Below, piece after piece: positions 1 to 29,862 of a DNA stretch of 29,862 nt (within the stretch, counting starts at the first letter, position 1; the number at the start of each line of letters is the position of its first letter). The position numbers and the translations under genes are program-made. Under the pieces are notes generated by a model. That model made no database searches, was not told where the DNA came from, and saw only the letters and a program-made list of their open reading frames with translations. The DNA lies in NCBI GenBank assembly GCA_004431415.1, contig QPMI01000681.1, positions 1 through 29,862 on the forward strand. The letters run 5' to 3'. The DNA is from Cyanophora paradoxa CCMP329 (lineage: Eukaryota; Plantae; Glaucophyta).

Positions 1-3000
1 AGAGTGGTTACTGATATCCATGGACAGAAAAAAGGAAACCACAAGTAGAAAAAGGAAGAGGCGCACCCAGTGGTCCACTCGAGATTGGTGAAGCCCCGGA
101 GGATAACCATTGTTGCCTCCGGTGTTGTTCCCGGTACATCAAGCCGGTGCACTTGACTGGAGACGCTGCAGCGCGCGGCACTTGCGTGGCCGTGCACTCC
201 AGTGCACCGTCGTTTGGCGGTAGGCGAGCCAGCTTCTCGACGTACGCACGTGCTGCGGGGCTCGCTGCCCTCGCGTCCCGTATCGCGGACCTTGCGACCA
301 CGGCGATGCTCCCCCGTACCGATCTGGAGCCTCCTTCCTCCCGTGACATTGCAGGGAACCAGTGCAGTTTCGCCTTCAGGGTATTGCTCAGCGCGTTGAA
401 GTATCGGTTCTCGGTGTTCGCCACGCTGCGACGCGCCCAAGTCAGAGCACGTTCAGCGGGAGAAGGGAAATAAGAAGGAAAAGAAACAAAGGAAAAGAAA
501 GAAAAGAGAAGGGGGTACGCGGACCGTCTGTACAAGCAGGACAGGATGGGTGTCGGAATAGGCCGCTCAGGTGTGCCTAGCCATAGAGGCTTGTTTCGCC
601 TCGTGTATGGCGGAGGCACATACGCCTCAACATCGATGTCCACATCGACCAATTGTCCGCGCCGTTTGGCTGAGTTTCTCGTGAGCTTGAGCATTTGCGA
701 TAACCGTTGCTCGTACCTGTTGGACTTTCCGTGTAGTTCTCCTGTATGCCGTCGCGCCGAGTTCGTCCACCTCGGGGTACTCCTCTCCAGAGTCGTTGCC
801 CCCATTCAGCATCCGGTGTGTTAGAACATCTGACTTGGAGCCCATCTGTTCCAGCACTGCAGCCACTTGCTTCAGAGCCTGAAAGCTGTTCTCCGCTGCG
901 CGACCTGTACCGTATTTCTCCTGCACCGGAATTAGAGTTCAGTAACCCCTTCTGTGGCGTCGTCTTCGTACCCCTCGCACGCACCGCCAGCTCTGGCTTC
1001 ATGCGCAGCCGGGTGAAGAGCTCGTTCGCCGGCGCTTCGTGGTGGAGAACGGCAGGGTTTCCCATTGCCTCGTGGCACGCCTGTGGAGAACGGCAGGGTA
1101 CGCGCATCAGCTCCACGTGTCGGGGGGGGGGGGTACGCGTAGCGAAGGGGAGGGGGGTTGGAGGGGGGGGTAGTCGAACCTCCATTGGACTTGGCGCCTG
1201 TTCGGGAGCCGGGCCTGGGTCTTGACCTGCTTGCCGCGCGGCCTCCCACGCTGCTCGCGCCCGCCTTGCGTTGCCGTGCTCCTCGTCGTCGAATGCCTTG
1301 GCTAGATCTACAAGGCCTTTGAATATGAGCTGGTTGGCAATTGTCGCCCACCGCCGAAAACGCGATTTGCGGACAAGGTCTGAGAAGATAATGCCGACTG
1401 ATATGCTGCTTGCCGGCCCTGCAAGAAGGCGAAGAAGCTCCTTGCCGCTCTTCCGAACAGCCTGCAGGACCTGCACATCGCTTGCAATCTTGCCGCCACG
1501 ACCGACATCCCTGTTGCCTCCGTACGCGTTGCACTTCCGAAGAAGCTTCTTCACCTCCGGGTACGACACGAGATCGTCCTGCGCCTTGCGCTTCCGCCCT
1601 TTCCCACGTGGCAACTCTTCCACCAACGCGGCCTCTGCAGCTGCTGCTGCAAGCTCCACACATGCATGAAGCCTGCGTCGCCATTGGTAAGAAAAAAAAC
1701 TTTACCCCCCCCCCCCCCCCCCCCCCCCCGGATGCATACCACAGCTGGAGTGATTCGCCTTCCCGTGTCTGCTGCTGTGCTGCGTGCACTGATTGAGCGA
1801 GACTGCGGAACTGGCCCTTCATTTCTTCCTTCGTGCCAAGGTACATTGCTTGCTGGCTGAGCCCGAGAGTCGCTTGCATACGCAGAAGGTTGATTTCAGA
1901 CTGTCCGTTTGTGACCTAATATAAAATTAAGAACATGTTACGAAAAGACAGAGCATGAAAGCATCGTGCACCTCCATGAAAGCATTTGCAAGACCTTGTG
2001 CCCGTGCAGGCTCACGGTCCAACTCAGCGTCTCCTGGCCGCAGGGCCAGAAGCTGTGTGAGCACAGCAGCAGCTGAGCGGATCTCGCCATCATCAGGGGC
2101 TGCATCACATTTCGGTTTTCAAAATAGAATGCAGTGATTTGAAGGGGACGTACTGTAGAAATCGAGTGATGAATTGCTCGATCGCCCGTAGAAGAACACC
2201 TCTATCCAGAGCGATAGGAACATCTTCGATTCAACAGCGTATGATCGTTTGTCATCGCTAGTACTTGTGTCATCCTTGCCCTCCTGAAAGTCCAGAGACA
2301 AGATGACCTGACCGGGCAGCAAGTAAGCAGAAGAAGCACGAGGCAAGCTGGCATGGACACGTGCCAGATCTATCTCTCGCAGTCGTCTCTCACGGATGTA
2401 GATCTTGTTGGTATAGAAGCTCGTCACCCGGGCCTTTAGCCAGTCGTAGTGCCTGGCTCGAAGGTCCGTATCCACTGCAAACTCACCGTGCGCCCCTGGC
2501 ACGCCAAGGCCCAGAAATGCACACTGTGCCTGCAGTGAGTGCCGTGCTTCAACTGGCCAAGAAAGATAGATGCTTACGTCCATATCAATGAGCTCATCGA
2601 GTTGAGAAGAGCTTGAGGTATCTTCCTTGTCGCCAGCAGCTATATCAGCATCTGGATGAGGGTCGGGACCGGTGCGCTGAAGGCTTGGCGATTCGAGTGC
2701 GACCTAAATGCAGTATCTCATGGCGAATCTCAAGCTAAAGAAGATCGAGGACGCACAGTGCTCATGAAGTGCTTCAGAGCATGGAGATCCTCCAGTGTCC
2801 GTGTCCGGTTCTTTGCTGGTTCACCTCGAAACTGCAACCGACAAGCGTTCGCCTGAGCTTGCCGAGCCGCTTCTGTCACCTGGAGAAGTTGGTCTTAGAT
2901 TCCATTCGATCAATTCTTTGAGCTGCAGAGCACCTCATCAAGCCAATCAACACAACTCTGAAATTTGGGGCCTCGAAACGCTCCCTTTGTGCCCACAAAC

Positions 3001-4551
3001 AGGTTGCGCAGTGCACGCAGCATCTGCAGGGGCAGGTCGACGATGATGTCCTCCACATAATGCACTTGGGGTCCAGATCTGCAAACATGATAAGACAAAG
3101 AGGCGGCGTGCAGATTCACAGAGAAACGCACAGATCTCGAAGGGTGCATGTGCTTGTCGCCTTCTGCCGCGCCACCAGCGTCGCCGCCCGCTGCGCGTCC
3201 AGGGCGCCACCCGCCGCGCCGCCTCCCGTTGCCGCCTCCCGCGCCGCCTCCCGCGCCGCCCGCGCCGCCTCCCGCGCCGCCTCCGCGCCGCGCACCGGGC
3301 CGGGGGGGGAGGGACAGGGCGGGGGGGCGGGCCCGGGGGAGGGCGGCCGGGGGAGGACGGGCCCGGGGGAGGGGCGGGGCGGGGGGAGGGGGCGGGGGGA
3401 GGGCGGCCGGGGAGGCGGGCCGGGGGGAGGGCGGCCCGGGGAGGGGCGGGCCGGGGGAGGGGGGCGGGGGAGGGGCGGGCCCGGGGGGGGAGGGGCGGCC
3501 CGGGGGGAGGGGCGGAGGCCGGGGGGAGGGCGGGCCGGGGGAGGGCGGGCCCGGGGGAGGGCGGGCACGGGGGGAGGGCGGCCGGGGGAGGGGGGGGCCC
3601 GGGGGAGGGGGGCCCGGGAGGGGAGGGCGGGACAAGCTCAAGGCCGGAGCCGCCCCGAGGCCGCCACGAGCCACACCCGCCGCGCGGCCGCCAGAAGGGG
3701 TTGGGAGATGAGCTGGAGGTCCACTCCATCTCTTCCTCCCCAAAGAGTGTGCTCCTGGGTCGACATGCTGCGCAGTCGGGCATAAGACACCGAAAAGCAG
3801 CATCGCTTGGCCAATGAGAAGCGGTGGACGTCAAGCCCGCGGCGACCGTTAGAACTGAGAACCAGAAGCGATCGCCGGCCCAGCAGCTCTTTGTTAGAGG
3901 TCGGACTCGCTGGGTATGGCGCCGAACACAAAGCGATCGCCGAGCAATGAGAAGGCTCTATGCGCGGGGCAGATCTAGCGATCCAATTGAATAGAGAATC
4001 TCTATGCGAGCAAGCTCGCAGCGCTACGGGAGGCGCACGCACTGCAGGCTTGGCGTTGGCTGGTGCGACGAACTTGAAGCAGCTCCTGCGCAAGCGATCG
4101 CCGGTCAAGGCGGGGCAGATTCTAGCGATCCAATTGAATAGAGAACTCTATGCGAGCAAGCTCGCAGCCGTACGGGAGGCTGGGCACGCACTGCAGGCGT
4201 TGGCGTTGGCTGGTGCGACGAACTTGAAGCAGCTCCTGCGCAAGCGATCGCCGGTCAGAGAGCCTTCTCATCGCTCCGGCGATCGCTAGGCCCTGGTACC
4301 GAGTACTCCGGGGCGATCGCCAGCGCGAAACCGTCGGACGACGGACGCGGCGCCGGCGATCGCTTGAAAAAGGCCCCGGCCAGATCCGAGCCCACGGCCG
4401 GCGGGCATAGTGAACATAGTGCCAAAATTTCGCTCCGAAAACACGCTTTTTAGAAGGATCGGAAGAAAGCGCGCCCAGGCAGGTCCGAGGGCGGTCCGGA
4501 CGTACCTACTGACTCAGAGCTGCTTGCGCTGGGCCCGCCGGGCGACGCCAT
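1..4551 (-). CDS. Spliced multi-exon gene of unknown function, copy A (last exon lies outside the window)
   Basis: Manual splice model. ATG at 4551 (consensus context AACCATGG); exon 1 is 4506-4551 (MASPGGPSASSSESV), followed by a GTACGT donor. Short introns: 3079-3131, 2880-2933, 2704-2756, 2530-2577, 2308-2364 (GC-AG), 2100-2153, 1916-1971, 1673-1739, 1081-1179, 921-984, 670-716, 426-524, with the last donor near 66. In the consensus the junctions from 2880-2933 onward join in frame: DWLDE|VTEAA, HFMST|VALES, LIDMD|AQCAF, LDFY-T|PDDG, AFME|VTNG, LQLW|LHAC, PSPME|ACHE, KPELA|EKYG, KVQQ|PNGA, CLYRR|VANT. Each individual copy has indel frameshifts. Confidence 0.75.
3212..3630. repeat. Compound minisatellite: 12-mer GCCGCCTCCCGC repeats followed by a G-rich ~15-18-mer (GGGCCCGGGGGAGGGGC-like) array, copy 1
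   Basis: Directly visible. The minus strand reads as (GPAPPP/GPVPPP)n then (GAGG)n in the most consistent frame. The G-rich part is ~337 bp. Confidence 0.95.
3962..4259. repeat. Tandem duplication of a ~150-bp cassette (2 copies) in unit 1
   Basis: GCGGGGCAGAT...GATCGCCGGTCA occurs twice, starting near 3964 and 4110. Confidence 0.95.
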
Positions 4552-4973
4552 GTTGAGAGATCGAATCCCTGCGCGCCGCCTTACAGCGGCCGAGGAAGGG
4601 GCGACGCTGCAGAATTCGATGATGTGAACCTCGGACAAGCGAAAGCGTGTAGCTAGCGCGCCGCCGGCGCCGCGGGTGAGCCGATGAAGCGAGCGATGTG
4701 TACTCCTCGCGTGCGCGGGGCGGCGAAGTCGCCTGCGGGGCGGGCGTGGCGCCGCGGGCTGGAGCACGGCGCGCGCGCTGCGAAAGCGCTATGCGCGAGC
4801 TTTGCGCGAGCTTTGCGTCGACGCCGGCGCGCCTCACTTTCGAAGTCGGGGTACCCCCCGACTCATTCCCCCTTAAACTTGGGGCTCGGTGGCTTAAAAG
4901 CGAAGGCTCTGGGGTACATCGACGAAATTTGACTTGCTCCACAAAATTGCAAGGCGGCTCAAGAACTCTACGC

Positions 4974-7900
4974 TCACTGGAAGTTCAACTGCGGCCCTAC
5001 AAACTGCTTGCACCGCTCCACTAGCTCATCTAGTCTACCTGGTCAGCAAACCGATCCTCCTCGGCCACTAGCGGCTGCGAAACCATTCTTTCGCAACCGC
5101 AACAAATGGTGCGCAGTCCATTGGCTGCGCTGGTGTGCCCGGCGCATACACCGACCCATCGAGGCGAGAAAAGAATCTCGAGCACGCGTCAGCTCGGCAT
5201 CTTGCCTTGAAGATGACCAGCGGTCGTGTGGAAGGTCATATCATGCACAGGCTCCGGAGCTGAAGAGGCCTGCACTAATGCAGCGGCGTGACTCTTGATG
5301 GTGACTCTGCTCTGATATATATGAGCTCGAGGCAATCAGCAAGATGGTTACTGATATCCATGACAGAAAAAAGGAAACCACAAGTAGAAAAAGGAAGAGG
5401 CGCACGGCCAGTGGTCCCACTCGAATTGGTGAAGCCCCGGAGGATAACCATTGTTCCTCCGTGTTGTTCCCGTACATCAAGCCGTGCACTTGACTGGAGA
5501 CGCTGCAGCGCGCGCACCTGCGTGGCCGTGCACTCCAGTGCACCGTCGTTTGGCGTAGGCGAGCCAGCTTCTCGACGTACGCACGTGCTGCGGGCTCGCT
5601 GCCCTCGCGTCCCGTATCGCGGTTGCGACCACGGCGATGCTCCCCCGTACCGATCTGGAGCCTCCTTCCTCCCGTGACATTGCAGGAACCATGCAGTTCG
5701 CCTTCAGGTATTGCTCAGCGCGTTGAAGTATCGGTTCTCGGTTCGCCACGCTGCGACGCGCCCAAGTCAGAGCACGTTCAGCGGGAGAAGGGAAATAAGA
5801 AGGAAAAGAAACAAAGGAAAAGAAGAAAAGAGAAGGGGTACGCGGACCGTCTGTACAAGCAGGACAGATGGGTGTCGGAATAGGCCGCTCAGGTGCCTAG
5901 CCATAGAGGCTTGTTTCGCTCGTGTATGGCGGAGGCACATACGCCTCAACATCGATGTCCACATCGACAATTGTCCCGCGCCGTTTGGCTGAGTTTCTCG
6001 TGAGCTTGAGCATTTGCGATAACCGTTGCTCGTACCTGTTGGACTTTCCGTGTAGTTCTCCTGTATGCCGTCGCGCCGAGTTCGTCCACCTCGGGTACTC
6101 CTCTCCAGAGTCGTTGCCCCCATTCAGCATCCGGTGTGTTAGAACATCTGACTTGGAGCCCATCTGTTCCAGCACTGCAGCCACTTGCTTCAGAGCCTGA
6201 AAGCTGTTCTCCGCGCGCGACCTTACCGTATTTCTCCTGCACCGGAATTAGAGTTCAGTAACCCCTTCTGTGCGTCGTCTTCGTACCCCTCGCACGCACC
6301 GCCAGCTCTGGCTCATGCGCAGCCGGGTGAAGAGCTCGTTCGCCGGCGCTTCGTGGTGGAGAACGGCAGGGTTTCCATTGCCTCGTGGCACGCCTGTGGA
6401 GAACGGCAGGGTACGCGCATCAGCTCCACGTGTCGGGGGGGGGGGGTACGCGTAGCGAAGGGGAGGGGTTGGAGGGGGGGGTAGTCGAACCTCCATTGGA
6501 CTTGGCGCCTGTTCGGGAGCGGGCCTGGGTCTTGACCTGCTTGCCGCGCGGCCTCCCACGCTGCTCGCGCCCGCCTTGCGTTGCCGTGCTCCTCGTCGTC
6601 GAATGCCTTGGCTAGATCTACAAGGCCTTGAATATGAGCTGGTTGGCAATTGTCGCCCACCGCCGAAAACGCGATTTGCGGACAAGTCTGAGAAGATAAT
6701 GCCGACTGATATGCTGCTTGCCGGCCCTGCAAGAAGCGAAGAAGCTCCTTGCCGCTCTTCCGAACAGCCTGCAGGACCTGCACATCGCTTGCAATCTTGC
6801 CGCCACGACCGACATCCCTGTTGCCTCCGTACGCGTTGCACTTCCGAAGAAGCTCTTCACCTCCGGGTACGACACGAGATCGTCCTGCGCTTGCGCTTCC
6901 GCCTTTCCCACGTGGCAACTCTTCCACCAACGCGGCCTCTGCAGCTGCTGCTGCAAGCTCCACACATGCATGAAGCCTGCGTCGCCATTGTAAGAAAAAA
7001 AACTTTACCCCCCTCCGCCCCCCCCCCCCCCCCCGGATGCATACCACAGCTGGAGTGATTCGCCTTCCCGTGTCTGCTGCTGTGCTGCGTGCACTGATTG
7101 AGCGAGACTGCGGAACTGCCCTTCATTTCTTCCTTCGTGCCAAGGTACATTGCTTGCTGGCTGAGCCCGAGAGTCGCTTGCATACGCAGAAGGTTGATTT
7201 CAGACTGTCCGTTTGTGACCTAATATAAAATTAAAGAACATGTTACGAAAAGACAGAGCATGAAAGCATCGTGCACCTCCATGAAAGCATTTGCAAGACC
7301 TTGTGCCCGTGCAGGCTCACGGTCCAACTCAGCGTCTCCTGGCCGCAGGGCCAGAAGCTGTTGAGCACAGCAGCAGCTGAGCGGATCTCGCCATCATCAG
7401 GGCTGCATCACATTTCGGTTTTCAAAATAGAATGCAGTGATTTGAAGGGGACGTACTGTAGAAATCGAGTGATGAATTGCTCGATCGCCCGTAGAAGAAC
7501 ACCTCTATCCAGAGCGATAGAACATCTTCGATTCAACAGCGTATGATCGTTTGTCATCGCTAGTACTTTGTTCATCCTTGCCCTCCTGAAAGTCCAGAGA
7601 CAAGATGACCTGACCGGGCAGCAAGTAAGCAGAAGAAGCACGAGGCAAGCTGGCATGGACACGTGCCAGATCTATCTCTCGCAGTCGTCTCTCACGGATG
7701 TAGATCTTGTTGGTATAGAAGCTCGTCACCCGGCCTTTAGCCAGTCGTAGTGCCTGGCTCGAAGGTCCGTATCCACTGCAAACTCACCGTGCGCCCCTGG
7801 CACGCCAAGGCCCAGAAATGCACACTGTGCCTGCAGTGAGTGCCGTGCTTCAACTGGCCAAGATAGATAGATGCTTACGTCCATATCAATGAGCTCATCG

Positions 7901-9832
7901 AGTTGAGAAAGCTTGAGGTATCTTCCTTGTCGCCAGCAGCTATATCAGCATCTGGATGAGGGTCGGGACCGGTGCGCTGAAGGCTTGGCGATTCGAGTGC
8001 GACCTAAATGCAGTATCTCATGGCGAATCTCAAGCTAAAGAAGATCGAGGACGCACAGTGCTCATGAAGTGCTTCAGAGCATGGAGATCCTCCAGTGTCC
8101 GTGTCCGTTCTTTGCTGGTTCACCTCGAAACTGCAACCGACAAGCGTTCGCCTGAGCTTGCCGAGCCGCTTCTGTCACCTGGATAAGTTGGTCTTAGATT
8201 CCATTCGATCAATTCTTTGAGCTGCAGAGCACCTCATCAAGCCAATCAACACAACTCTGAAATTTGGGGCCTCGAAACGCTCCCTTTGTGCCCACAAACA
8301 GGTTGCGCAGTGCACGCAAGCATCTGGCAGGGGCAGGTCGACGATGATGTCCTCCACATAATGCACTTGGGGGTCCAGATCTGCAAACATGATAAGACAA
8401 AGAGGCGGCGTGCAGATTTCACAGAGAAACGCACAGATCTCGAAGGGTGCATGTGCTTGTCGCCTTCTGCCAGCGCCACCAGCGTCGCCGCCCGCTGCGC
8501 CGTCCAGGGCGCCACCCGCCGCGCCGCCTCCCGTGCCGCCTCCCGCCGCTCCCGCGCCGCCTCCCGCGCCGCCTCCCGCGCCGCCTCCCGCGCGCGCACC
8601 GGCCGGGGAGGGGGGACAGGGCCGGGGGGGGGCGGCCGGGGGAGGGCGGCCGGGGAGGACGGCCCGGGGGAGGCGGGCCGGGGAGGGGGGGGCGGAGGGG
8701 CGGCCCGGGAGGGCGGGCCCGGGGAGGGGCGGCCCGGGGAGGGCGGGCCGGGGAGGGGGGCGGGGGAGGGCGGCCCGGGGAGGGCGGCCCGGGGAGGGGC
8801 GGCCCGGGGGAGGGGCGGCCGGGGGAGGGACGGGCCGGGGAGGGCGGGCCGGGGAGGACGGCCGGGGGAGGCGGGCCGGGGAGGGGCGGGCCCGGGAGGG
8901 AGGCGGGGACAAGCTCAAGGCCGGAGCCGCCCCCGAGGCCGCCCACGAGGCCACCACCCGCCGCGCGGCCCGCCAGAAGGGGTTGGGAGATGAGCTGGAG
9001 GTCCACTCCATCTCTTCCTCCCAAAGAGTGTGCTCCTGGGGTCGACATGCTGCGCAGTCGGCATAAGACACCGAAAAGCAGCGATCGCTTGGCCAATGAG
9101 AAGGCGGTGGACGTCAAGCCCGCGGCGACCGTTAGAACTGAGAACCAGAAGCGATCGCCGGCCCAGCAGCTCTTTGTTAGAGGTCGGACTCGCTGGGTAT
9201 GGCGCCGAACACAAAGCGATCGCCGAGCAATGAGAAGGCTCTATGCGCGGGCAGATCTAGCGATCCAATTGAATAGAGAATCTCTATGCGAGCAAGCTCG
9301 CAGCGCTACGGGAGGCGGGCACGCACTGCAGGCGTTGGCGTTGGCTGGTGCGACGAACTTGAAGCAGCTCCTGCGCAAGCGATCGCCGGTCAGAGCGCGG
9401 GCAGATCTAGCGATCCAATTGAATAGAGAATCTCTATGCGAGCAAGCTCGCAGCGCTACGGGAGGCGGGCACGCACTGCAGGCGTTGGCGTTGGCTGGTG
9501 CGACGAACTTGAAGCAGCTCCTGCGCAAGCGATCGCCGGTCAGAGAGCCTTCTCATCGCTCCGGCGATCGCTAGGCCTGGTACCGAGTACTCCGGGCGAT
9601 CGCCAGCGCGAACCGTCGGACGACGGACGCGGCGCCGGCGATCGCTTGAAAAAGGCCCCGGCCAGATCCGAGCCCACGGCCGGCGGCATAGTGAACATAG
9701 TGCCAAAATTTCGCTCCGAAAACACGCTTTTTAGAAGGATCGGAAGAAAGCGCGCCCAGGCAGGTCCGAGGGCGGTTCCGGGACGTACCTACTGACTCAG
9801 AGCTGCTTGCGCTGGCCGCCGGGCGACGCCAT
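4974..9832 (-). CDS. Spliced multi-exon gene of unknown function, copy B (~1,100 aa in consensus)
   Basis: Same model as copy A. ATG at 9832; last intron 5307-5405 (GTGCGC...CAG); stop TGA at 4974-4976 after VGPQLNFQ. This copy has many 1-bp deletions, probably sequencing errors. Confidence 0.72.
8518..8908. repeat. Compound G-rich minisatellite, copy 2
   Basis: As in copy 1; the G-rich part is ~310 bp. Confidence 0.95.
9245..9544. repeat. Exact tandem duplication of the 150-bp cassette in unit 2
   Basis: 9245-9394 is identical to 9395-9544. The cassette is single in units 3, 4 and 5 (e.g. 14587-14737). Confidence 0.97.
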
Positions 9833-10247
9833 GGTGAGAGATCGAATCCCTGCGCGCCGCCTTACAGCGGCCGAGGAAGGGGCGACGGCTGCAGAATTCG
9901 ATGATGTGAACCTCGGACAAGCGAAAGCGTGTAGCTAGCGCGCCGCCGCGCCGCGGGTGAGCCGATGAAGCGAGCGATGTGTACTCCTCGCGTGCGCGGG
10001 CGCGGCGAAGTCGCCTGCGGGGCGGCGTGGCGCCGCGGGCTGAGCACGGCGCGCGCGCTGCGAAGCGCTATGCGCGAGCTTTGCGCGAGCTTTGCGTCGA
10101 CGCCGCGCGCCTCACTTTCGAAGGTCGGGTACCCCCGACTCATTCCCCCTAAACTTGGGGCTCGGTGGCTTAAAAGCGAAGGCTCTGGGTACATCGACGA
10201 AATTTGACTTGCTCCACAAAATTGCAAGGCGCTCAAGAACTCTACGC

Positions 10248-15029: not shown

Positions 15030-15450
15030 GGTTGAGAGATCGAATCCCTGCGCGCCGCCTTACAGCGGCCGAGGAAGGGGCGACGGCTGCAGAATTCGAT
15101 GATGTGAACCTCGGACAAGCGAAAGCGTGTAGCTAGCGCGCCGCCGGCGCCGCGGGTGAGCCGATGAAGCGAGCGATGTGTACTCCTCGCGTGCGCGGGC
15201 GCGGCGAAGTCGCCTGCGGGGCGGGCGTGGCGCCGCGGGGCTGAGCACGCGCGCGCGCTGCGAAGCGCTATGCGCGAGCTTTGCGCGAGCTTTGCGTCGA
15301 CGCCGCGCGCCTCACTTTCGAAGGTCGGGGTACCCCCCGACTCATTCCCCCCTAAACTTGGGGCTCGGTGGCTTAAAAGCGAAGGCTCTGGGTACATCGA
15401 CGAAATTTGACTTGCTCCACAAAATTGCAAGGCGCTCAAGAACTCTACGC
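15030..15450 (-). promoter_or_regulatory. ~420-bp intergenic spacer holding the 3' UTR/terminator of one copy and the promoter/5' UTR of the next
   Basis: Lies between the stop of copy D (15451) and the ATG of copy C (15029). It is CGCG-rich, with a TGCGCGAGCTT direct repeat and a GTCGGGGTACCCC(CC)GAC near-palindrome. The role is inferred from position. Confidence 0.5.
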
Positions 15451-18400: not shown

Positions 18401-20261
18401 TACGTCCATATCAATGAGCTCATCGAGTTGAGAAGAGCTTGAGGTATCTTCCTTGTCGCCAGCAGCTATATCAGCATCTGGATGAGGGTCGGGACCGGTG
18501 CGCTGAAGGCTTGGCGATTCGAGTGCGACCTAAATGCAGTATCTCATGGCGAATCTCAAGCTAAAGAAGATCGAGGACGCACAGTGCTCATGAAGTGCTT
18601 CAGAGCATGGAGATCCTCCAGTGTCCGTGTCCGGTTCTTTGCTGGTTCACCTCGAAACTGCAACCGACAAGCGTTCGCCTGAGCTTGCCGAGCCGCTTCT
18701 GTCACCTGGATAAGTTGGTCTTAGATTCCATTCGATCAATTCTTTGAGCTGCAGAGCACCTCATCAAGCCAATCAACACAACTCTGAAATTTGGGCCTCG
18801 AAACGCTCCCTTTGTGCCCACAAACAGGTGCGCAGTGCACGCAAGCATCTGGCAGGGGCAGGTCGACGATGATGTCCTCCACATAATGCACTTGGGGGTC
18901 CAGATCTGCAAACATGATAAGACAAAGAGGCGGCGTGCAGATTTCACAGAGAAACGCACAGATCTCGAAGGGTGCATGTGCTTGTCGCCTTCTGCCAGCG
19001 CCACCAGCGTCGCCGCCCGCTGCGCCGTCCAGGGCGCCACCCGCCGCGCCGCCTCCCGTGCCGCTCCCGCGCCGCCTCCCGCGCCGCCTCCCGCGCCGCC
19101 TCCCGCGCGCCTCCGCGCCGCCACCGGGCCGGGGGAGGGGGAGGGACAGGGCCGGGGGGGGGGGCGGGCCCGGGGGGAGGGCGGGGCCGGGGAGGGACGG
19201 GCCCGGGGGAGGGGCGGGCCGGGGGGAGGGGGGGGGGGGGAGGGGCGGGCCCGGGGGAGGGGCGGGCCCGGGGGAGGGGCGGGCCCGGGGGGAGGGCGGG
19301 GCCGGGGGGAGGGGGGGCGGGGGAGGGGCGGGCCCGGGGGAGGGGCGGCCCGGGGGAGGGGCGGGCCGGGGGAGGGGCGGGGCCGGGGGAGGACGGGCCC
19401 GGGGGAGGGGCGGGCCCGGGGGAGGGACGGGCCCGGGGGAGGGCGGGGCCGGGGGGAGGGCGGGGCCCGGGGGAGGGGAGGGGCGGGGACAAGCTCAAGG
19501 CCGGAGCCGCCCCCGAGGCCGCCCACGAGGCCACCACCCGCCGCGCGGCCCGCCAGAAGGGGGTTGGGAGATGAGCTGGAGGTCCACTCCATCTCTTCCT
19601 CCCAAGAGTGTGCTCCTGGGGTCGACATGCTGCGCAGTCGGCATAAGACACCGAAAAGCAGCGATCGCTTGCCAATGAGAAGGCGGTGGACGTCAAGCCC
19701 GCGGCGACCGTTAGAACTGAGAACCCAGAAGCGATCGCCGGCCCAGCAGCTCTTTGTTAGAGGTCGGACTCGCTGGGTATGGCGCCGAACACAAAGCGAT
19801 CGCCGAGCAATGAGAAGCTCTATGCGCGGGGCAGATCTAGCGATCCAATTGAATAGAGAATCTCTATGCGAGCAAGCTCGCAGCGCTACGGAGGCGGGCA
19901 CGCACTGCAGGCGTTGGCGTTGGCTGGTGCGACGAACTTGAAGCAGCTCCTGCGCAAGCGATCGCCGTCAGAGAGCCTTCTCATCGCTCCGGCGATCGCT
20001 AGCCCTGGTACCGAGTACTCCGGGGCGATCGCCAGCGCGAACCGTCGGACGACGGACGCGGCGCCGGCGATCGCTTGAAAAGGCCCCGGCCAGATCCGAG
20101 CCCACGGCCGGCGGCATAGTGAACATAGTGCCAAAATTTCGCTCCGAAAACACGCTTTTTAGAAGGATCGGAAGAAAGCGCGCCCAGCAGTCCGAGGGGC
20201 GGTTCCGGGACGTACCTACTGACTCAGAGCTGCTTGCGCTGGGCCCGCCGGGCGACGCCAT
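15451..20261 (-). CDS. Spliced multi-exon gene of unknown function, copy D
   Basis: Collinear with the other copies. ATG at 20261, TGA at 15451-15453, splice sites conserved. Confidence 0.75.
19042..19488. repeat. Compound G-rich minisatellite, copy 4
   Basis: As in copy 1; the G-rich part is ~365 bp. Confidence 0.95.
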
Positions 20262-20678
20262 GGTTGAGAGATCGAATCCCTGCGCGCCGCCTTACAGCGG
20301 CCGAGGAAGGGGCGACGGCTGCAGAATTCGATGATGTGAACCTCGGACAAGCGAAAGCGTGTAGCTAGCGCGCCGCGGCGCCGCGGGTGAGCCGATGAAG
20401 CGAGCGATGTGTACTCTCGCGTGCGCGGGCGCGGCGAAGTCGCCTGCGGGGCGGGCGTGGCGCCGCGGGGCTGAGCACGGCGCGCGCGCTGCGAAGCGCT
20501 ATGCGCGAGCTTTGCGCGAGCTTTGCGTCGACGCCGCGCGCCTCACTTTCGAAGTCGGGGTACCCCCGACTCATTCCCCCTAAACTTGGGGCTCGGTGGC
20601 TTAAAAGCGAAGGCTCTGGGGTACATCGACGAAATTTGACTTGCTCACAAAATTGCAAGGCGCTCAAGAACTCTACGC

Positions 20679-23600
20679 TCACTGGAAGTTCAACTGCGGC
20701 CCTACAAACTGCTTGCACCGCTCCACTAGCTCATCTAGTCTACCTGGGTCAGCAAACCGATCCTCCTCGGCCACTAGCGGCTTGCGGAACCATTCTTTCG
20801 CAACCGCAACAAATGGTGCGCAGTCCATGGGCTGCGCTGGTGGTGCCCGCGCATACCACCCGACCCCATCGAGGCGAGAAAAGAATCTCGAGCACGCGGT
20901 CAGCTCGGCATCTTGCCTTGAAGATGGAGCCAGCGGTCGTGTGGAAGGTCATATCATGCACAGGCTCCGAGAGCTGAAGGAGGGCCTGCACTAATGCAGC
21001 GGCGTGACTCTTGATGGTGACTCTGCTCGTGATATATATGAGCTCGAGGCAATCAGCAAGAGTGGTTACTGATATCCATGGACAGAAAAAGGAAACCACA
21101 AGTAGAAAAAGGAAGAGGCGCACGGCCAGTGGTCCCACTCGAGATTGGTGAAGCCCCGGAGATAACCATTGTTGCCTCCGGTGTTGTTCCCGGTACATCA
21201 AGCCGGTGCACTTGACTGGAGACGCTGCAGCGCGCGGCACCTTGCGTGGCCGTGCACTCCAGTGCACCGTCGTTTGGCGGTAGGCGAGCCAGCTTCTCGA
21301 CGTACGCACGTGCTGCGGGGCTCGCTGCCCTCGCGTCCCGTATCGCGGTTGCGACCACGGCGATGCTCCCCCGTACCGATCTGGAGCCTCTTCCTCCCGT
21401 GACATTGCAGGGAACAGTGCAGTTTCGCCTTCAGGGTATTGCTCAGCGCGTTGAAGTATCGGTTCTCGGTGTTCGCACGCTGCGACGCGCCCAAGTCAGA
21501 GCACGTTCAGCGGGAGAAGGGAAATAAGAAGGAAAAGAAACAAAGGAAAAGAAAGAAAAGAGAAGGGGGTACGCGGACCGTCTGTACAAGCAGGACAGGA
21601 TGGGTGTCGGAATAGGCCGCTCAGGTGTGCCTAGCCATAGAGGCTTGTTTCGCCTCGTGTATGGCGGAGGCACATACGCCTCAACATCGATGTCCACATC
21701 GACCAATTGTCCCGCGCCGTTTGGCTGAGTTTCTCGTGAGCTTGAGCATTTGCGATAACGTTGCTCGTACCTGTTGGACTTTCCGTGTAGTTCTCCTGTA
21801 TGCCGTCGCGCCGAGTTCGTCCACCTCGGGGTACTCCTCTCCAGAGTCGTTGCCCCCATTCAGCATCCGGTGTGTTAGAACATCTGACTTGGAGCCCATC
21901 TGTTCCAGCACTGCAGCCACTTGCTTCAGAGCCTGAAAGCTGTTCTCCGCTGCGCGACCTGTACCGTATTTCTCCTGCACCGGATTAGGTTCAGTAACCC
22001 CTTCTGTGGCGTCGTCTTCGTACCCTCGCACGCACCGCCAGCTCTGGCTTCATGCGCAGCCGGGTGAAGAGCTCGTTCGCCGGCGCTTCGTGGTGGAGAA
22101 CGCAGGTTTCCCATTGCTCGTGGCACGCCTGTGGAGAACGGCAGGGTACGCGCATCAGCTCCACGTGTCGGGGGGGGGGTACGCGTAGCGAAGGGGGAGG
22201 GGGTTGGAGGGGGGTAGTCGACCTCCATTGACTTGGCGCCTGTTCGGGAGCCGGGCCTGGGTCTTGACCTGCTTGCCGCGCGCCTCCCACGCTGCTCGCG
22301 CCCGCCTTGCGTTGCCGTGCTCCTCTCGTCGAATGCCTTGGCTAGATCTACAAGCCTTTGAATATGAGCTGGTTGGCAATTGTCGCCCACCGCCGAAAAC
22401 GCGATTTGCGGACAAGGTCTGAGAAGATAATGCCGACTGATATGCTGCTTGCCGGCCCTGCAAGAAGGCGAAAGAAGCTCCTTGCCGCTCTTCCGAACAG
22501 CCTGCAGGACCTGCACATCGCTTGCAATCTTGCCGCCACGACCGACATCCCTGTTGCCTCCGTACGCGTTGCACTTCCGAAGAAGCTTCTTCACCTCCGG
22601 GTACGACACGAGATCGTCCTGCGCCTTGCGCTTCCGCCCTTTCCCACGTGGCAACTCTTCCACCAACGCGGCCTCTGCAGCTGCTGCTGCAAGCTCCACA
22701 CATGCATGAAGCCTGCGTCGCCATTGGTAAGAAAAAAAACTTTCCCCCCCCCCCCCCCCCCCCCCCCCCCCGGATGCATACCACAGCTGGAGTGATTCGC
22801 CTTCCCGTGTCTGCTGCTGTGCTGCGTGCACTGATTGAGCGAGACTGCGGAACTGGCCCTTCATTTCTTCCTTCGTGCCAAGTACATTGCTTGCTGGCTG
22901 AGCCCGAGAGTCGCTTGCATACGCAGAAGGTTGATTTCAGACTGTCCGTTTGTGACCTAATATAAAATTAAGAACATGTTACGAAAAGACAGAGCATGAA
23001 AGCATCGTGCACCTCCATGAAAGCATTTGCAAGACTTGTGCCCGTGCAGGCTCACGGTCCAACTCAGCGTCTCCTGGCCGCAGGGCCAGAAGCTGTGTGA
23101 GCACAGCAGCAGCTGAGCGGATCTCGCCATCATCAGGGGCTGCATCACATTTCGGTTTTCAAAATAGAATGCAGTGATTTGAAGGGACGTACTGTAGAAA
23201 TCGAGTGATGAATTGCTCGATCGCCCGTAGAAGAACACCTCTATCCAGAGCGATAGAACATCTTCGATTCAACAGCGTATGATCGTTTGTCATCGCTAGT
23301 ACTTGTGTCATCCTTGCCCTCCTGAAAGTCCAGAGACAAGATGACCTGACCGGGCAGCAAGTAAGCAGAAGAAGCACGAGGCAAGCTGGCATGGACACGT
23401 GCCAGATCTATCTCTCGCAGTCGTCTCTCACGGATGTAGATCTTGTTGGTATAGAAGCTCGTCACCCGGGCCTTTAGCCAGTCGTAGTGCCTGGCTCGAA
23501 GGTCCGTATCCACTGCAAACTCACCGTGCGCCCCTGGCACGCCAAGGCCCAGAAATGCACACTGTGCTGCAGTGAGTGCCGTGCTTCAACTGGCCAAGAT

Positions 23601-25425
23601 AGATAGATGCTTACGTCCATATCAATGAGCTCATCGAGTTGAGAAGAGCTTGAGGTATCTTCCTTGTCGCCAGCAGCTATATCAGCATCTGGATGAGGGT
23701 CGGACGGTGCGCTGAAGGCTTGGCGATTCGATCGACCTAAATGCAGTATCTCATGGCGAATCTCAAGCTAAAGAAGATCGAGGACGCACAGTGCTCATGA
23801 AGTGCTTCAGAGCATGGAGATCCTCCAGTGTCCGTGTCCGTTCTTTGCTGGTTTCACCTCGAAACTGCAACCGACAAGCGTTCGCCTGAGCTTGCCGAGC
23901 CGCTTCTGTCACCTGGATAAGTTGGTCTTAGATTCCATTCGATCAATTCTTTGAGCTGCAGAGCACCTCATCAAGCCAATCAACACAACTCTGAAATTTG
24001 GGCCTCGAAACGCTCCCTTTGTGCCCACAAACAGGTTGCGCAGTGCACGCAAGCATCTGCAGGGGCAGGTCGACGATATGTCCTCCACATAATGCACTTG
24101 GGGGTCCAGATCTGCAAACATGATAAGACAAAGAGGCGGCGTGCAGATTTCACAGAGAAACGCACAGATCTCGAAGGGTGCATGTGCTTGTCGCCTTCTG
24201 CCAGCGCCACCAGCGTCGCCGCCCGCTGCGCCGTCCAGGCGCCACCCGCCGCGCCGCCTCCCGTGCCGCCTCCCGCGCCGCCTCCCCGCCTCCCGCCGCC
24301 TCCCGCCGCTCCGCGCGCCACCGGGCCGGGGGAGGGGAGGGACAGGGCCGGGGGGGGCGGCCCGGGGGGAGGGCGGGCCGGGGGGAGGGACGGGCCCGGG
24401 GAGGGGCGGGCGGGGGGGGGGGGCGGGGAGGGGCGGCCCGGGGGGAGGCGGCCGGGGGAGGGCGGGCCCGGGGGAGGGCGGGCCGGGGGGGGGGGGGCGG
24501 GGGAGGGCGGCCCGGGGGAGGGGCGGCCCGGGGGAGGGCGGCCCGGGGGAGGGCGGGCCGGGGGGACGGGCCGGGGGAGGGCGGGCCGGGGGAGGGACGG
24601 GCCCGGGGAGGGGCGGGCCGGGGGAGGGGCGGGGCCCGGGGAGGGAGGCGGACAAGCTCAAGCCGGAGCGCCCCCGAGGCCGCCCACGAGGCCACCACCC
24701 GCGCGCGGCCGCCAGAAGGGTTGGAGATGAGCTGGAGGTCCACTCCATCTCTTCCTCCCCAAAGAGTGTGCTCCTGGGGTCGACATGCTGGCAGTTCGGG
24801 CATAAGACACCGAAAAGCAGCGATCGCTTGGCCAATGAGAAGGCGGTGGACGTCAAGCCCGCGGCGACCGTTAGAACTGAGAACCCAGAAGCGATCGCCG
24901 GCCCAGCAGCTCTTTGTTAGAGGTCGGACTCGCTGGGTATGGCGCCGAACACAAAGCGATCGCCGAGCAATGAGAAGGCTCTATGCGCGGGCAGATCTAG
25001 CGATCCAATTGAATAGAGAATCTCTATGCGAGCAAGCTCGCAGCGCTACGGGAGGCGGCACGCACTGCAGGCGTTGGCGTTGGCTGGTGCGACGAACTTG
25101 AAGCAGCTCCTGCGCAAGCGATCGCCGGTCAGAGAGCCTTCTCATCGCTCCGGCGATCGCTAGGCCCTGGTACCGAGTACTCCGGGGCGATCGCCAGCGC
25201 GAACCGTCGGACGACGGACGCGGCGCCGGCGATCGCTTGAAAAAGGCCCCGGCCAGATCCGAGCCCACGGCCGGCGGGCATAGTGAACATAGTGCCAAAA
25301 TTTCGCTCCGAAAACACGCTTTTAGAAGGATCGGAAGAAAGCGCGCCCAGGCAGGTCCGAGGGGCGGTTCCGGACGTACCTACTGACTCAGAGCTGCTTG
25401 CGCTGGGCCCGCCGGGCGACGCCAT
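20679..25425 (-). CDS. Spliced multi-exon gene of unknown function, copy E
   Basis: Collinear with the other copies. ATG at 25425, TGA at 20679-20681. Confidence 0.72.
24247..24651. repeat. Compound G-rich minisatellite, copy 5
   Basis: As in copy 1; the G-rich part is ~331 bp. Confidence 0.95.
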
Positions 25426-25844
25426 GGTTGAGAGATCGAATCCCTGCGCGCGCCTTACAGCGGCCGAGGAAGGGCGACGGCTGCAGAATTCGATGATGTG
25501 AACTCGGACAAGCGAAAGCGTGTAGCTAGCGCGCCGCCGGCGCCGCGGGTGAGCCGATGAAGCGAGCGATGTGTACTCCTCGCCGTGCGCGGGCGCGGCG
25601 AAGTCGCCTGCGGGGCGGGCTGGCGCCGCGGGGCTGAGCACGGCGCGCGCGCTGCGAAGCGCTATGCGCGAGCTTTGCGCGAGCTTTGCGTCGACGCCGC
25701 GCGCCTCACTTTCGAAGGTCGGGGTACCCCCCGACTCATTCCCCCCTAAACTTGGGGGCTCGGTGGCTAAAAGCGAAGGCTCTGGGGTACATCGACGAAA
25801 TTTGACTTGCTCCACAAATTGCAAGGCGCTCAAGAACTCTACGC

Positions 25845-27943
25845 TCACTGGAAGTTCAACTGCGGCCCTACAAACTGCTTGCACCGCTCCACTAGCTCAT
25901 CTAGTCTACCTGGGTCAGCAAACCGATCCTCCTCGGCCATAGCGGCTTGCGGAACCATTCTTTCGCAACCGCAACAAATGGTGCGCAGTCCATTGGGCTG
26001 CGCTGGTGGTGCCCGGCGCATACCACCCGACCCCATCGAGGCGAGAAAAGAATCTCGAGCACGCGGTCAGCTCGGCATCTTGCCTTGAAGATGGAGCCAG
26101 CGGTCGTGTGGAAGGTCATATCATGCACAGGCTCCGAGAGCTGAAGGAGGGCCTGCACTAATGCAGCGGCGTGACTCTTGATGGTGACTCTGCTCGTGAT
26201 ATATATGAGCTCGAGGCAATCAGCAAGAGTGGTTACTGATATCCATGGACAGAAAAAGGAAACCACAAGTAGAAAAAGGAAGAGGCGCACGGCCAGTGGT
26301 CCCACTCGAGATTGGTGAAGCCCCGGAGGATAACCATTGTTGCCTCCGGTGTTGTTCCCGGTACATCAAGCCGGTGCACTTGACTGGAGACGCTGCAGCG
26401 CGCGGCACCTTGCGTGGCCGTGCACTCCAGTGCACCGTCGTTTGGCGGTAGGCGAGCCAGCTTCTCGACGTACGCACGTGCTGCGGGGCTCGCTGCCCTC
26501 GCGTCCCGTATCGCGGTTGCGACCACGCGGCGCGCGACGGCGATCTCCCCCGTACCGATCTGAGCCTCCTTCCTCCCGTGACATTGCAGGGAACCAGTGC
26601 AGTTTCGCCTTCAGGGTATTGCTCAGCGCGTTGAAGTATCGGTTCTCGGTGTTCGCCACGCTGCGACGCGCCCAAGTCAGAGCACGTTCAGCAGAAGGGA
26701 AATAAGAAGGAAAAGAAACAAAGGAAAAGAAAGAAAAGAGAAGGGGGTACGCGGACCGTCTGTACAAGCAGGACAGGATGGGTGTCGGAATAGGCCGCTC
26801 AGGTGTGCCTAGCCATAGAGGCTTGTTTCGCCTCGTGTATGGCGGAGGCACATACGCCTCAACATCGATGTCCACATCGACCAATTGTCCCGCGCCGTTT
26901 GGCTGAGTTTCTCGTGAGCTTGAGCATTTGCGATAACCGTTGCTCGTACCTGTTGGACTTTCCGTGTAGTTCTCCTGTATGCCGTCGCGCCGAGTTCGTC
27001 CACCTCGGGGTACTCCTCTCCAGAGTCGTTCCCCATTCAGCATCCATTCAGCATTGTGTTAGAACATCTGACTTGGAGCCCATCTGTTCCAGCACTGCAG
27101 CCACTTGCTTCAGAGCCTGAAAGCTGTTCTCCGCTGCGCGACCTGTACCGTATTTCTCCTGCACCGGAATTAGAGTTCAGTAACCCCTTCTGTGGCGTCG
27201 TCTTCGTACCCCTCGCACGCACCGCCAGCTCTGGCTTCATGCGCAGCCGGGTGAAGAGCTCGTTCGCCGGCGCTTCGTGGTGGAGAACGGCAGGGTTTCC
27301 CATTGCCTCGTGGCACGCCTGTGGAGAACCGGCAGGTACGCGCATCAGCTCCACGTGTCGGGGGGGGGGGGGGTACGCGTAGCGAAGGGGAGGGGGGTTG
27401 GAGGGGGGGGGGTAGTCGAACCTCCATTGGACTTGCGCGCCTTTCGGGAGCCGGGCCTGGGTCTTGACCTGCTTGCCGCGCGGCCTCCCACGCTGCTCGC
27501 GCCCGCCTTGCGTTGCCGTGCTCCTCGTCGTCGAATGCCTTGGCTAGATCTACAAGGCCTTTGAATATGAGCTGGTTGGCAATTGTCGCCCACCGCGAAA
27601 ACGCGATTTGCGGACAAGGTCTGAGAAGATAATGCCGACTGATATGCTGCTTGCCGGCCCTGCAAGAAGGCGAAAAGCTCCTTGCCGCTCTTCCGAACAG
27701 CCTGCAGGACCTGCACATCGCTTGCAATCTTGCCGCCACGACCGACATCCCTGTTGCCTCCGTACGCGTTGCACTTCCGAAGAAGCTTCTTCACCTCGGG
27801 TACGACACGAGATCGTCCTGCGCCTTGCGCTTCCGCCCTTTCCCACGTGGCAACTCTTCCACCAACGCGGGCCTCTGCAGCTGCTGCTGCAAGTCCACAC
27901 ATGCATGAAGCCTGCGTCGCCATTGGTAAAAAAAAAAACTTTT

Positions 27944-27974
<31 letters not shown>

Positions 27975-29862
27975 ATGCATACCACAGCTGGAGTGATTCG
28001 CCTTCCCGTGTCTGCTGCTGTGCTGCGTGCACTGATTGAGCGAGACTGCGGAACTGGCCCTTCATTTCTTCCTTCGTGCCAAGGTACATTGCTTGCTGGC
28101 TGAGCCCGAGAGTCGCTTGCATACGCAGAAGGTTGATTTCAGACTGTCCGTTTGTGACCTAATATAAAATTAAGAACATGTTACGAAAAGACAGAGCATG
28201 AAAGCATCGTGCACCTCCATGAAAGCATTTGCAAGACCTTGTGCCCGTGCAGGCTCACGGTCCAACTCAGCGTCTCCTGGCCGCAGGGCCAGAAGCTGTG
28301 TGAGCACAGCAGCAGCTGAGCGGATCTCGCCATCATCAGGGGCTGCATCACATTTCGGTTTTCAAAATAGAATGCAGTGATTTGAAGGGGACGTACTGTA
28401 GAAATCGAGTGATGAATTGCTCGATCGCCCGTAGAAGAACACCTCTATCCAGAGCGATAGGAACATCTTCGATTCAACAGCGTATGATCGTTTGTCATCG
28501 CTCAGTACTTGTGTCATCCTTGCCCTCCTGAAAGTCCAGAGACAAGATGACCTGACCGGGCAGCAAGTAAGCAGAAGAAGCACGAGGCAAGCTGGCATGG
28601 ACACGTGCCAGATCTATCTCTCGCAGTCGTTCTCACGGATGTAGTCTTGTTGGTATAGAAGCTCGTCACCGGGCCTTTAGCCAGTCGTAGTGCCTGGCTC
28701 GAAGGTCCGTATCCACTGCAAACTCACCGTGCGCCCTGGCACGCCAAGGCCCCAGAAATGCACACTGTGCCTGCAGTGAGTGCCGTGCTTCAACTGGCCA
28801 AGATAGATAGATGCTTACGTCCATATCAATGAGCTCATCGAGTTGAGAAGAGCTTGAGGTATCTTCCTTGTCGCCAGCAGCTATATCAGCATCTGGATGA
28901 GGTCGGGACCGGTGCCGCTGAAGGCTTGGCGATCTCGAGTGCGACCTAAATGCAGTATCTCATGGCGGAATCTCAAGCTAAAGAAGATCGAGGACGCACA
29001 GTGCTCATGAAGTGCTTCAGAGCATGGAGATCCTCCAGTGTCCGTGTCCGGTTCTTTGCTGGTTCACCTCGAAACTGCAACCGACAAGCGTTCGCCTGAG
29101 CTTGCCGAGCCGCTTCTCGTCACCTGGATAAGTTGGTCTTAGATTTCCATTCGATCAATTCTTTGAGCTGCAGAGCACCTCATCAAGCCAATCAACACAA
29201 CTCTGAAATTTGGGGCCTCGAAAACGCTCCCTTTGTGCCCACAAACAGGTTGCGCAGTGCACGCAAGCATCTGGCAGGGGGCAGGTCGACGATGATGGTC
29301 CTCCACATAATGCACTTGGGGTCCAGATCTGCAAACATGATAAGACAAAGAGGCGGCGTGCAGATTCACAGAGAAACGCACAGAATATCGAAGGGTGCAT
29401 GATGCTTGTCGCCTTCTGCCAGCGCCACCAGCGTCGCCGCCCGCTGCGCCGTCCAGGGCGCCACCGCCGCCGCCGCCTCCCGGCCGCCTCCCGCGCCGCC
29501 TCCCGCGCCGCCTCCCGCCGCCGCCTCCCGCGCCGCCTCCCGCGCCGCGCACCGGGCCGGGGGGAGGGGGAGGGACAGGGCCGGGGGGGGGGCGGGCCGG
29601 GGGAGGGGCGGGGCCGGGGGGAGGGACGCGGGCCCGGGGGAGGGCGGGGCCCGGGGGAGGGGGGGGGCGGTGGGAGGGGCGGGCCCGAGGGGCGGGCCCG
29701 GGGAGGGGCGGGCCCGGGGGGGGGGCGGGGCCGGGGGAGGGGGGGGGGCGGGGGGAGGGGCGGGCCCGGGGGAGGGCGGGCCCGGGGGGAGGGGCGGGCC
29801 GGGGAGGGGCGGGCCGGGGGAGGGACGGGCCCGGGGGGAGGGCGGCCCGGGGGGAGGGACGG
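25845..29862 (-). CDS. Spliced multi-exon gene of unknown function, copy F (5' end lies outside the window)
   Basis: TGA at 25845-25847. Exons are collinear up to the G-rich VNTR, where the window ends. Confidence 0.72.
29465..29862. repeat. Compound G-rich minisatellite, copy 6 (truncated)
   Basis: As in copy 1; it runs off the window end. Confidence 0.95.

Follow-up and report, generated by a model that had tools for sequence, protein, structure and literature searches.

What does a contig represent that holds a single gene repeated head to tail and nothing else? The 29,862-nt stretch of Cyanophora paradoxa CCMP329 analyzed here (contig QPMI01000681.1; "the window" denotes this stretch at its full length) is a direct tandem repeat from end to end, as seen by both a repeat search and a self-comparison, and its units follow one another, all head to tail, with a start-to-start spacing of 5.20-5.31 kb. 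The original prediction, made from the letters alone, had proposed a one-gene unit of 5.2 kb in at least six near-identical direct copies, corresponding either to a recent or homogenized amplification or to a 5.2-kb circle read as a rolling-circle concatemer. We interpret the window, with a probability of roughly 55%, as a chromosomal array that was recently amplified or homogenized; its gene is lineage-specific and transcribed, and the regulatory part of this gene would come from mobile repeats.

Five complete and two partial units, equal to ~5.7 unit-equivalents, make up the window, and the self-comparison thus bears out the predicted unit in at least six direct copies. A partial unit corresponding to the last ~2.3 kb of the unit (1-2314; no mismatch to unit 3 in 2323 aligned bases) precedes units 1 (2315-7616, 5302 nt) and 2 (7617-12913, 5297 nt), which both carry a 150-bp duplication, followed by units 3 (12914-18140, 5227 nt), 4 (18141-23352, 5212 nt), and 5 (23353-28558, 5206 nt), and by another partial unit (28559-29862), in which the window ends within a G-rich minisatellite. 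Compared to unit 3, the reference unit of our comparisons, the other copies show 0-24 mismatches, mostly within this minisatellite, and 19-113 gap openings. The copies are therefore near-identical, as predicted, and direct copies of this kind support the idea of a recent or homogenized amplification.

We compared four public sequencing runs with positions 10000-15200 of the window, namely a DNA-type run (X1) and three runs from independent studies that are labelled only "RNA?" (X15, X17, and X18). Each of the latter three includes a contig of 2.2-2.5 kb that skips ten stretches of 47-106 nt, bounded by CT..AC, which corresponds to GT..AG on the minus strand; the same stretches are present unspliced in X1. 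These joints indicate that the three contigs are derived from cDNA and that the gene lies on the minus strand. The corresponding introns occupy, in plus-strand coordinates, 10589-10690, 11045-11138, 11284-11330, 11532-11594, 11690-11787, 12278-12342, 12517-12572, 12701-12753, 12908-12963 (GC-AG), and 13680-13733, and the part of the gene covered by one spliced cDNA-type contig in all three studies extends from 10420 to 13854 on the minus strand. The gene is real, transcribed, and spliced. Its introns measure 47-135 nt, and their sizes and number fit the species, which has a mean of 9.2 introns per gene and a mean intron length of 86 bp (PMC6704402).

No single copy shows a clean frame, and we built a consensus of the copies in which a column was kept if at least two copies have a base. 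The RNA-defined introns were removed from this consensus, with their ends refined to GT-AG and, for one of them, to GC-AG. Upstream of 13122, splice signals point to three further short introns; the exons that they imply amount to 427 nt, to be compared with the 428 nt remaining in the RNA contig. The intron-free consensus is a single open frame of 895 codons, ending at the TGA at 10251-10249. The two other frames contain 25 stops each, and the longest frame among 500 shuffles of the same letters has 297 codons. GC contents at the first, second, and third codon positions are 0.645, 0.46, and 0.625, respectively, and the amino-acid make-up is ordinary.

The 5' end of the gene, made up of a start exon and a micro-exon, was read from the sequence and from an RNA joint (14712>14983) found in X18. 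The start exon (14984-15029, minus strand) consists of MASPGGPSASSSESV and one further nucleotide; its donor is GTACGT, and the intron after it measures 270 nt. The 44-nt micro-exon (14670-14713, minus strand), followed by a GTGCGT donor, lies both within an inverted-repeat element resembling a miniature inverted-repeat transposable element (MITE) and within the segment duplicated in units 1 and 2. One gene copy then spans 10249-15029 on the minus strand, from the ATG at 15029-15027 to the TGA at 10251-10249, with ~16 exons and ~1,050-1,150 codons. This reconstruction agrees with the gene span of 10248-15029 given by the original prediction, and the RNA-type contigs and the reading-frame test confirm that one intron-rich gene almost fills the unit.

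The non-coding frames of this gene are unusually open: two of the three frames are open across exon F (11788-12278), and in the unspliced consensus, at offsets ~2715-4994 (e.g. 16410-17723 in unit 3), a second frame stays open for 760 codons across several exons and introns. Overlapping open frames in C. paradoxa are remarked on in the genome paper (PMC6704402). An imperfect palindrome, GTCGGGTACCCCCGAC, at 10125-10142, lies ~110 nt past the stop codon on the gene strand and may belong to the 3' end signal.

Why, then, is the frame broken in single copies? Of the 201 gap runs in an alignment of the five full units, 177 span 1-2 bases, 156 of them within homopolymers. The commonest small gap in the multiple alignment is one base missing from a single copy, and nearly all apparent substitutions are found within the G-rich minisatellite or beside indels. 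An apparent single-nucleotide polymorphism common to units 1 and 2 (alignment column 3508) is an artefact of homopolymer alignment. These small differences among the units have the signature of long-read error, not of divergence. The published assembly was produced from PacBio RSII reads of ~15-kb inserts with Canu and Quiver, and its short-read majority correction leaves uncovered places unchanged (PMC6704402); a perfect repeat is exactly where such polishing breaks down. Frames are thus broken in single copies because PacBio homopolymer deletions survive in a repeat beyond the reach of short-read polishing. The partial unit at 1-2314 holds the sole error-free copy of exon F, an intact frame of 164 codons (1177-1668, minus strand) that includes a PRGKGRKRKAQ patch resembling a nuclear localization signal (NLS) and that served as a search query. 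In the intron between exons G and F, we also observe a homopolymer of 25-29 C (G on the gene strand) at 1705-1729, 22744-22771, and 27944-27972, with a shorter version at 17530-17555; this variation in length from copy to copy may be real or read error.

Two other differences among the units are too large for read error. A 150-bp tandem duplication (2.0 copies at 100% identity) is found at 3964-4257 in unit 1 and at 9245-9545 in unit 2, and the same segment is single-copy in units 3-5. The minisatellite block, measured between fixed anchors, is 484, 461, 504, 516, and 471 nt long in the five full units. Since the duplication and the minisatellite length differ between units, the copies are physically distinct, which was already proposed on the basis of the 150-bp variant in copies 1 and 2; the accompanying statement that there is no spacer variation was not quite right, given these same two differences (461-516 nt for the minisatellite block). 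The 150-bp segment sits between two 26-nt inverted repeats with GCGATCGC (14567-14754 in unit 3). The 44-nt micro-exon and its splice sites are inside this segment and consequently occur twice in units 1 and 2, where the use of both would shift the frame.

The minisatellites lie between the micro-exon and the verified part of the gene. The G-rich one, with a 17-nt period (13900-14248, ~20 copies, with a length that depends on the unit), reads on the minus strand as a proline-rich stretch of the PPPGP type. The other one, with a 12-nt period (CCGCGCCGCCTC, 13785-13894), is Gly/Ala-rich in the coding frame, and the short-read RNA contigs stop there. The 17-nt period is not a multiple of 3 in a place where coding sequence is expected, all three of its frames are proline-rich, and the amounts by which its length differs between units do not divide by 51. 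This leaves three readings: a loss of frame at the 17-nt array in many copies, read errors as the source of the differences, or an array that is non-coding.

The octamer GCGATCGC has 36 occurrences in the window, where 1.2 would be expected, with seven or eight per unit, all at one place; in unit 3, seven of them are clustered at 14423-14840, among inverted repeats of ~26 nt (14422-14447/14740-14765 and 14567-14592/14729-14754). The inverted repeats found in the unit are confined to 14422-14842. The stretch from 14350 to 15200 is common to a dispersed high-copy repeat family, as its summed contig depth in X1 is ~12,000-57,000, compared to ~1,500 for the unit body (range ~1,000-1,650). More specifically, the depth is 11,900 at 14350-14523, 56,700 at 14524-14697, and 21,000-40,000 at 14698-15200, which makes the palindrome stretch 8-37 times as deep as the unit body, and it is still ~5,000 at 10000-10347. 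Hundreds of contigs, no more than 90-95% alike, account for the extra depth. In addition, RNA contigs of 1.2-1.4 kb from other loci match 14701-15030 at ~95% and then continue into unrelated sequence. These contigs indicate that the segments 14350-15200 and 10000-10520 belong to abundant, transcribed, dispersed repeats; in the tandem context they form one contiguous block of ~1.4 kb, comprising the spacer, the first exon, the 5' introns, and the 3' untranslated region, at 2-37 times the unit-body depth in X1. The palindrome cluster is thus a copy of a dispersed MITE-like repeat and not a replication origin specific to the unit, which undercuts the original view of the palindromic sites as the mark of a replicon. 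Matches to DNA contigs from other loci end at 10039 on the left side and begin at 10095 on the right. These two breaks flank an 11-nt repeat, GCTTTGCGCGA (10067-10096), and could represent the ends of a mobile unit, ~55 nt apart; by eye, we see no terminal inverted repeats between these putative ends.

The predicted protein would have ~1,050-1,150 residues and would begin with a Ser/Pro-rich start, followed by the proline-rich stretch, a Gly-rich linker, and ~855 residues of ordinary composition that include the NLS-like KRK patch, a feature that may reflect a nuclear role. Searches for relatives were run exon by exon, using whichever copy is intact for the exon concerned, so that domains straddling exons may escape them. 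Pfam gave no match for the exons in their correct frames or for the raw open frames, many of which are broken or off-frame, and the correctly framed exons had no match among PDB sequences or in the ESM Atlas. A phmmer search of 1.84 billion representatives with 12805-13302 (minus strand) returned 0 matches, a weak negative because ~40% of this query is intron read-through, and a word search of 5.8 billion clusters with 21929-22936 (minus strand) also returned 0 matches among candidates limited to 185-588 aa. Viral and Joint Genome Institute (JGI) metagenome contigs contained no relatives of exon F. The gene is therefore orphan-like, as the original prediction had it.

Specific families were considered as well. 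By Pfam, exon by exon, we found no transposase, integrase, Rep, or helicase family in any exon, and, with the raw frames included, no Harbinger/PIF transposase or Myb-like partner in the unit. For a putative SUMO-protease-like C-terminus of the Ulp/SENP type (clan CE, C48), the pieces from exons B and A gave no match in Pfam or PDB; residues in the order H..D..Q..C are visible by eye in exon B (LHWF, IRD, TQGAARC), which is weak. A CxxCxxC...CxxxxHxH pattern, a candidate for a domain that straddles exons, extends across two exons. Rfam (gathering and E-value thresholds) and a tRNA search detected no rRNA, tRNA, or other RNA family in the window, and thus nothing above threshold in the unit that would correspond to a structural RNA gene of the ribosomal DNA (rDNA), 5S, small nuclear RNA, or spliced-leader RNA type. 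Promoter and terminator scans of the window were at chance level.

The expressed RNA and the DNA differ at one place. In exon F, the contigs of X15, X17, and X18 are 25 nt shorter than the DNA (468 versus 493 nt). They also differ at 12066, where A replaces G; read on the mRNA strand, this is a C>U change that turns an Ala codon into a Val codon. X1 and all six copies of the window have G at 12066 and the full-length exon. The dominant RNA may be the product of a variant copy outside the window, or it may be processed. Several sources of the 25-nt difference were considered and rejected: an alternative acceptor (TTGCAG) located 26 nt inside exon F fits the total length, but the shared letters of the joint fit a 69-nt intron, and neither a mini-intron in exon F, nor slippage between direct repeats, nor an IRE1-type pair of CNGNNGN sites fits. 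X1 also has a variant of the 3' end (10095-10296) that is 95% alike and deeper than the form found in the window, and the gene family consequently has members beyond the array.

Could the repetition itself be an artefact of sequencing or assembly, made from a single-copy gene? The contig is rich in errors and may rest on very few long reads, but the unit has a contig depth of ~1,500 in an independent DNA run of 2024, compared to 40-118 for rare variant contigs on the unit-body stretch, so that the unit body is 10-40 times deeper than these variants. Moreover, ~70% of the 31-letter words of the unit are present in 14 DNA-type runs of 2024, about what full coverage gives at the indel error rate of the window, and the units show real structural differences. 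Repeated passes in single-molecule real-time (SMRT) sequencing alternate strands, and a direct repeat cannot result from them. An artefact is hardly credible in view of these data. The differences between units and the strand alternation also rule out a 5.2-kb monomer circle read repeatedly, and the rolling-circle alternative of the original prediction was not borne out in that form. The variation between neighboring units rules out such a monomer only, not a multimer. An extrachromosomal amplicon of several units, i.e. a self-replicating circular or linear episome, would account for a contig without flank, for the high depth in X1, and for a sequence that closes on itself, which is compatible with either topology. 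Nevertheless, no replication-initiator family was found in the exons with Pfam, the palindrome cluster is a dispersed repeat instead of a unit-specific element, and a repeat-only contig is the usual assembler outcome for a chromosomal tandem array. For these reasons, we regard an episome as unlikely.

A closer competitor treats the unit as a mobile element, present or recent, with the ~1,100-residue protein as its enzyme, unrecognized by profile libraries. The spacer and 5' region would then owe their high-copy relatives to non-autonomous derivatives of the element, and the array would have arisen by the element's own replication or by repeated end-to-end insertion. Consistent with this are the contiguous block of elevated depth (unit offsets ~1440-2900, 2-37 times the unit body in X1), the breaks of the other-locus contigs at 10039 and 10095 as possible ends ~55 nt apart, the inverted 26-nt repeats with GCGATCGC, a GC content under the genome mean, and the CxxCxxC...CxxxxHxH pattern. 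However, the exon searches turned up nothing from the transposase, integrase, Rep, or helicase families, inspection by eye shows no terminal inverted repeat between the putative ends, and the unit-body depth is flat, without sign of dispersed full-length copies. The ~15 introns and the low-complexity region encoded by a minisatellite resemble a host gene, and the depth gradient suggests several nested repeat families instead of one pair of ends. We thus consider a mobile element to be a tentative possibility, though an unlikely one. Rather more doubtful is the wider idea of a selfish glaucophyte element that amplifies itself, either as mobile DNA or as an episome, and whose protein would be an unrecognized enzyme of mobility or replication and whose ends would be shared with the abundant short derivatives rich in GCGATCGC. 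In that case, a distinct master copy or programmed processing would be the source of the RNA that differs from the bulk DNA in exon F (25 nt shorter, C>U).

The chromosomal array remains the interpretation that we favor. The 5.2-kb unit would be one complete gene with ~0.4-0.5 kb of spacer in a nuclear tandem gene array, or macrosatellite, and the minus-strand gene, with ~15 short introns, would encode a lineage-specific protein of ~1,100 residues. The PacBio inserts being ~15 kb long, single molecules carried ~3 units, in line with an array. Unequal exchange or gene conversion between copies probably enlarged the array and maintained its uniformity, and may also have shuffled the lengths of the minisatellite and carried the 150-bp duplication into two neighboring units. 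The spacer and 5' introns would have been supplied by dispersed, GCGATCGC-rich, MITE-like repeats, and part of the unit is thus presumably of mobile-element origin, since these parts are built from high-copy dispersed sequence. Several observations weigh against the array. Unique flank is absent at both ends, the window being repeat throughout. The gene has a GC content of 58% in its exons (62% at third codon positions), well under the genome mean of 67.6% (PMC6704402), and this low GC content, together with the ~1.4 kb shared with dispersed repeats, is as compatible with a mobile element as with a host gene. The 25-nt loss in exon F would put exons E to A out of frame with the upstream exons and break the 895-codon frame, and the copies in the window may not be the expressed ones. 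The copy number is only rough: the unit is clearly multicopy, with perhaps tens of copies if the rare variants are single-copy, which is a weak inference.

Gene-bearing macrosatellites are known in human, such as D4Z4 with DUX4 (3.3 kb) and RS447 with USP17 (4.7 kb). Like them, the Cyanophora array has a kilobase-scale head-to-tail unit, near-identical copies, and one open reading frame per unit, and it is transcribed. Unlike them, its gene has ~15 introns, fills ~90% of the unit, and encodes a protein without known family. The head-to-tail one-gene units, short spacers, and concerted evolution are also reminiscent of the trypanosomatid tubulin arrays, the dinoflagellate gene arrays, and the histone, 5S, and rDNA arrays, whereas the Cyanophora gene is not a housekeeping gene, matches no RNA family, and shows no sign of trans-splicing or polycistronic processing. 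Protist nuclear plasmids (Dictyostelium Ddp) and rDNA circles (Naegleria, Euglena, Entamoeba) share with it the small size, the multiple copies, the self-closing sequence, and the absence of flanks, but the Cyanophora unit has no Rep-type gene or rRNA, and units within one molecule differ.

The evidence for transcription and splicing, the reconstruction of the frame, the attribution of the broken frames to sequencing error, the assignment of the palindrome cluster to a dispersed repeat, and the discrepancy between RNA and DNA in exon F are new here. The broken frames serve as a warning that orphan genes in unpolished repeat contigs seem cryptic merely through homopolymer errors. The disagreement between the dominant forms of RNA and DNA is a concrete puzzle, and testing it would be cheap. 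The gene family probably occupies at least 100 kb of the genome, compared to ~10 copies in the assembly. If the unit were a selfish element or an episome, it would suggest a class of eukaryotic mobile DNA that has not been described, and it would account for how the abundant GCGATCGC-rich family arose. If it is a gene array, it offers a clean case, within the glaucophytes, of a recently amplified gene and of concerted evolution.

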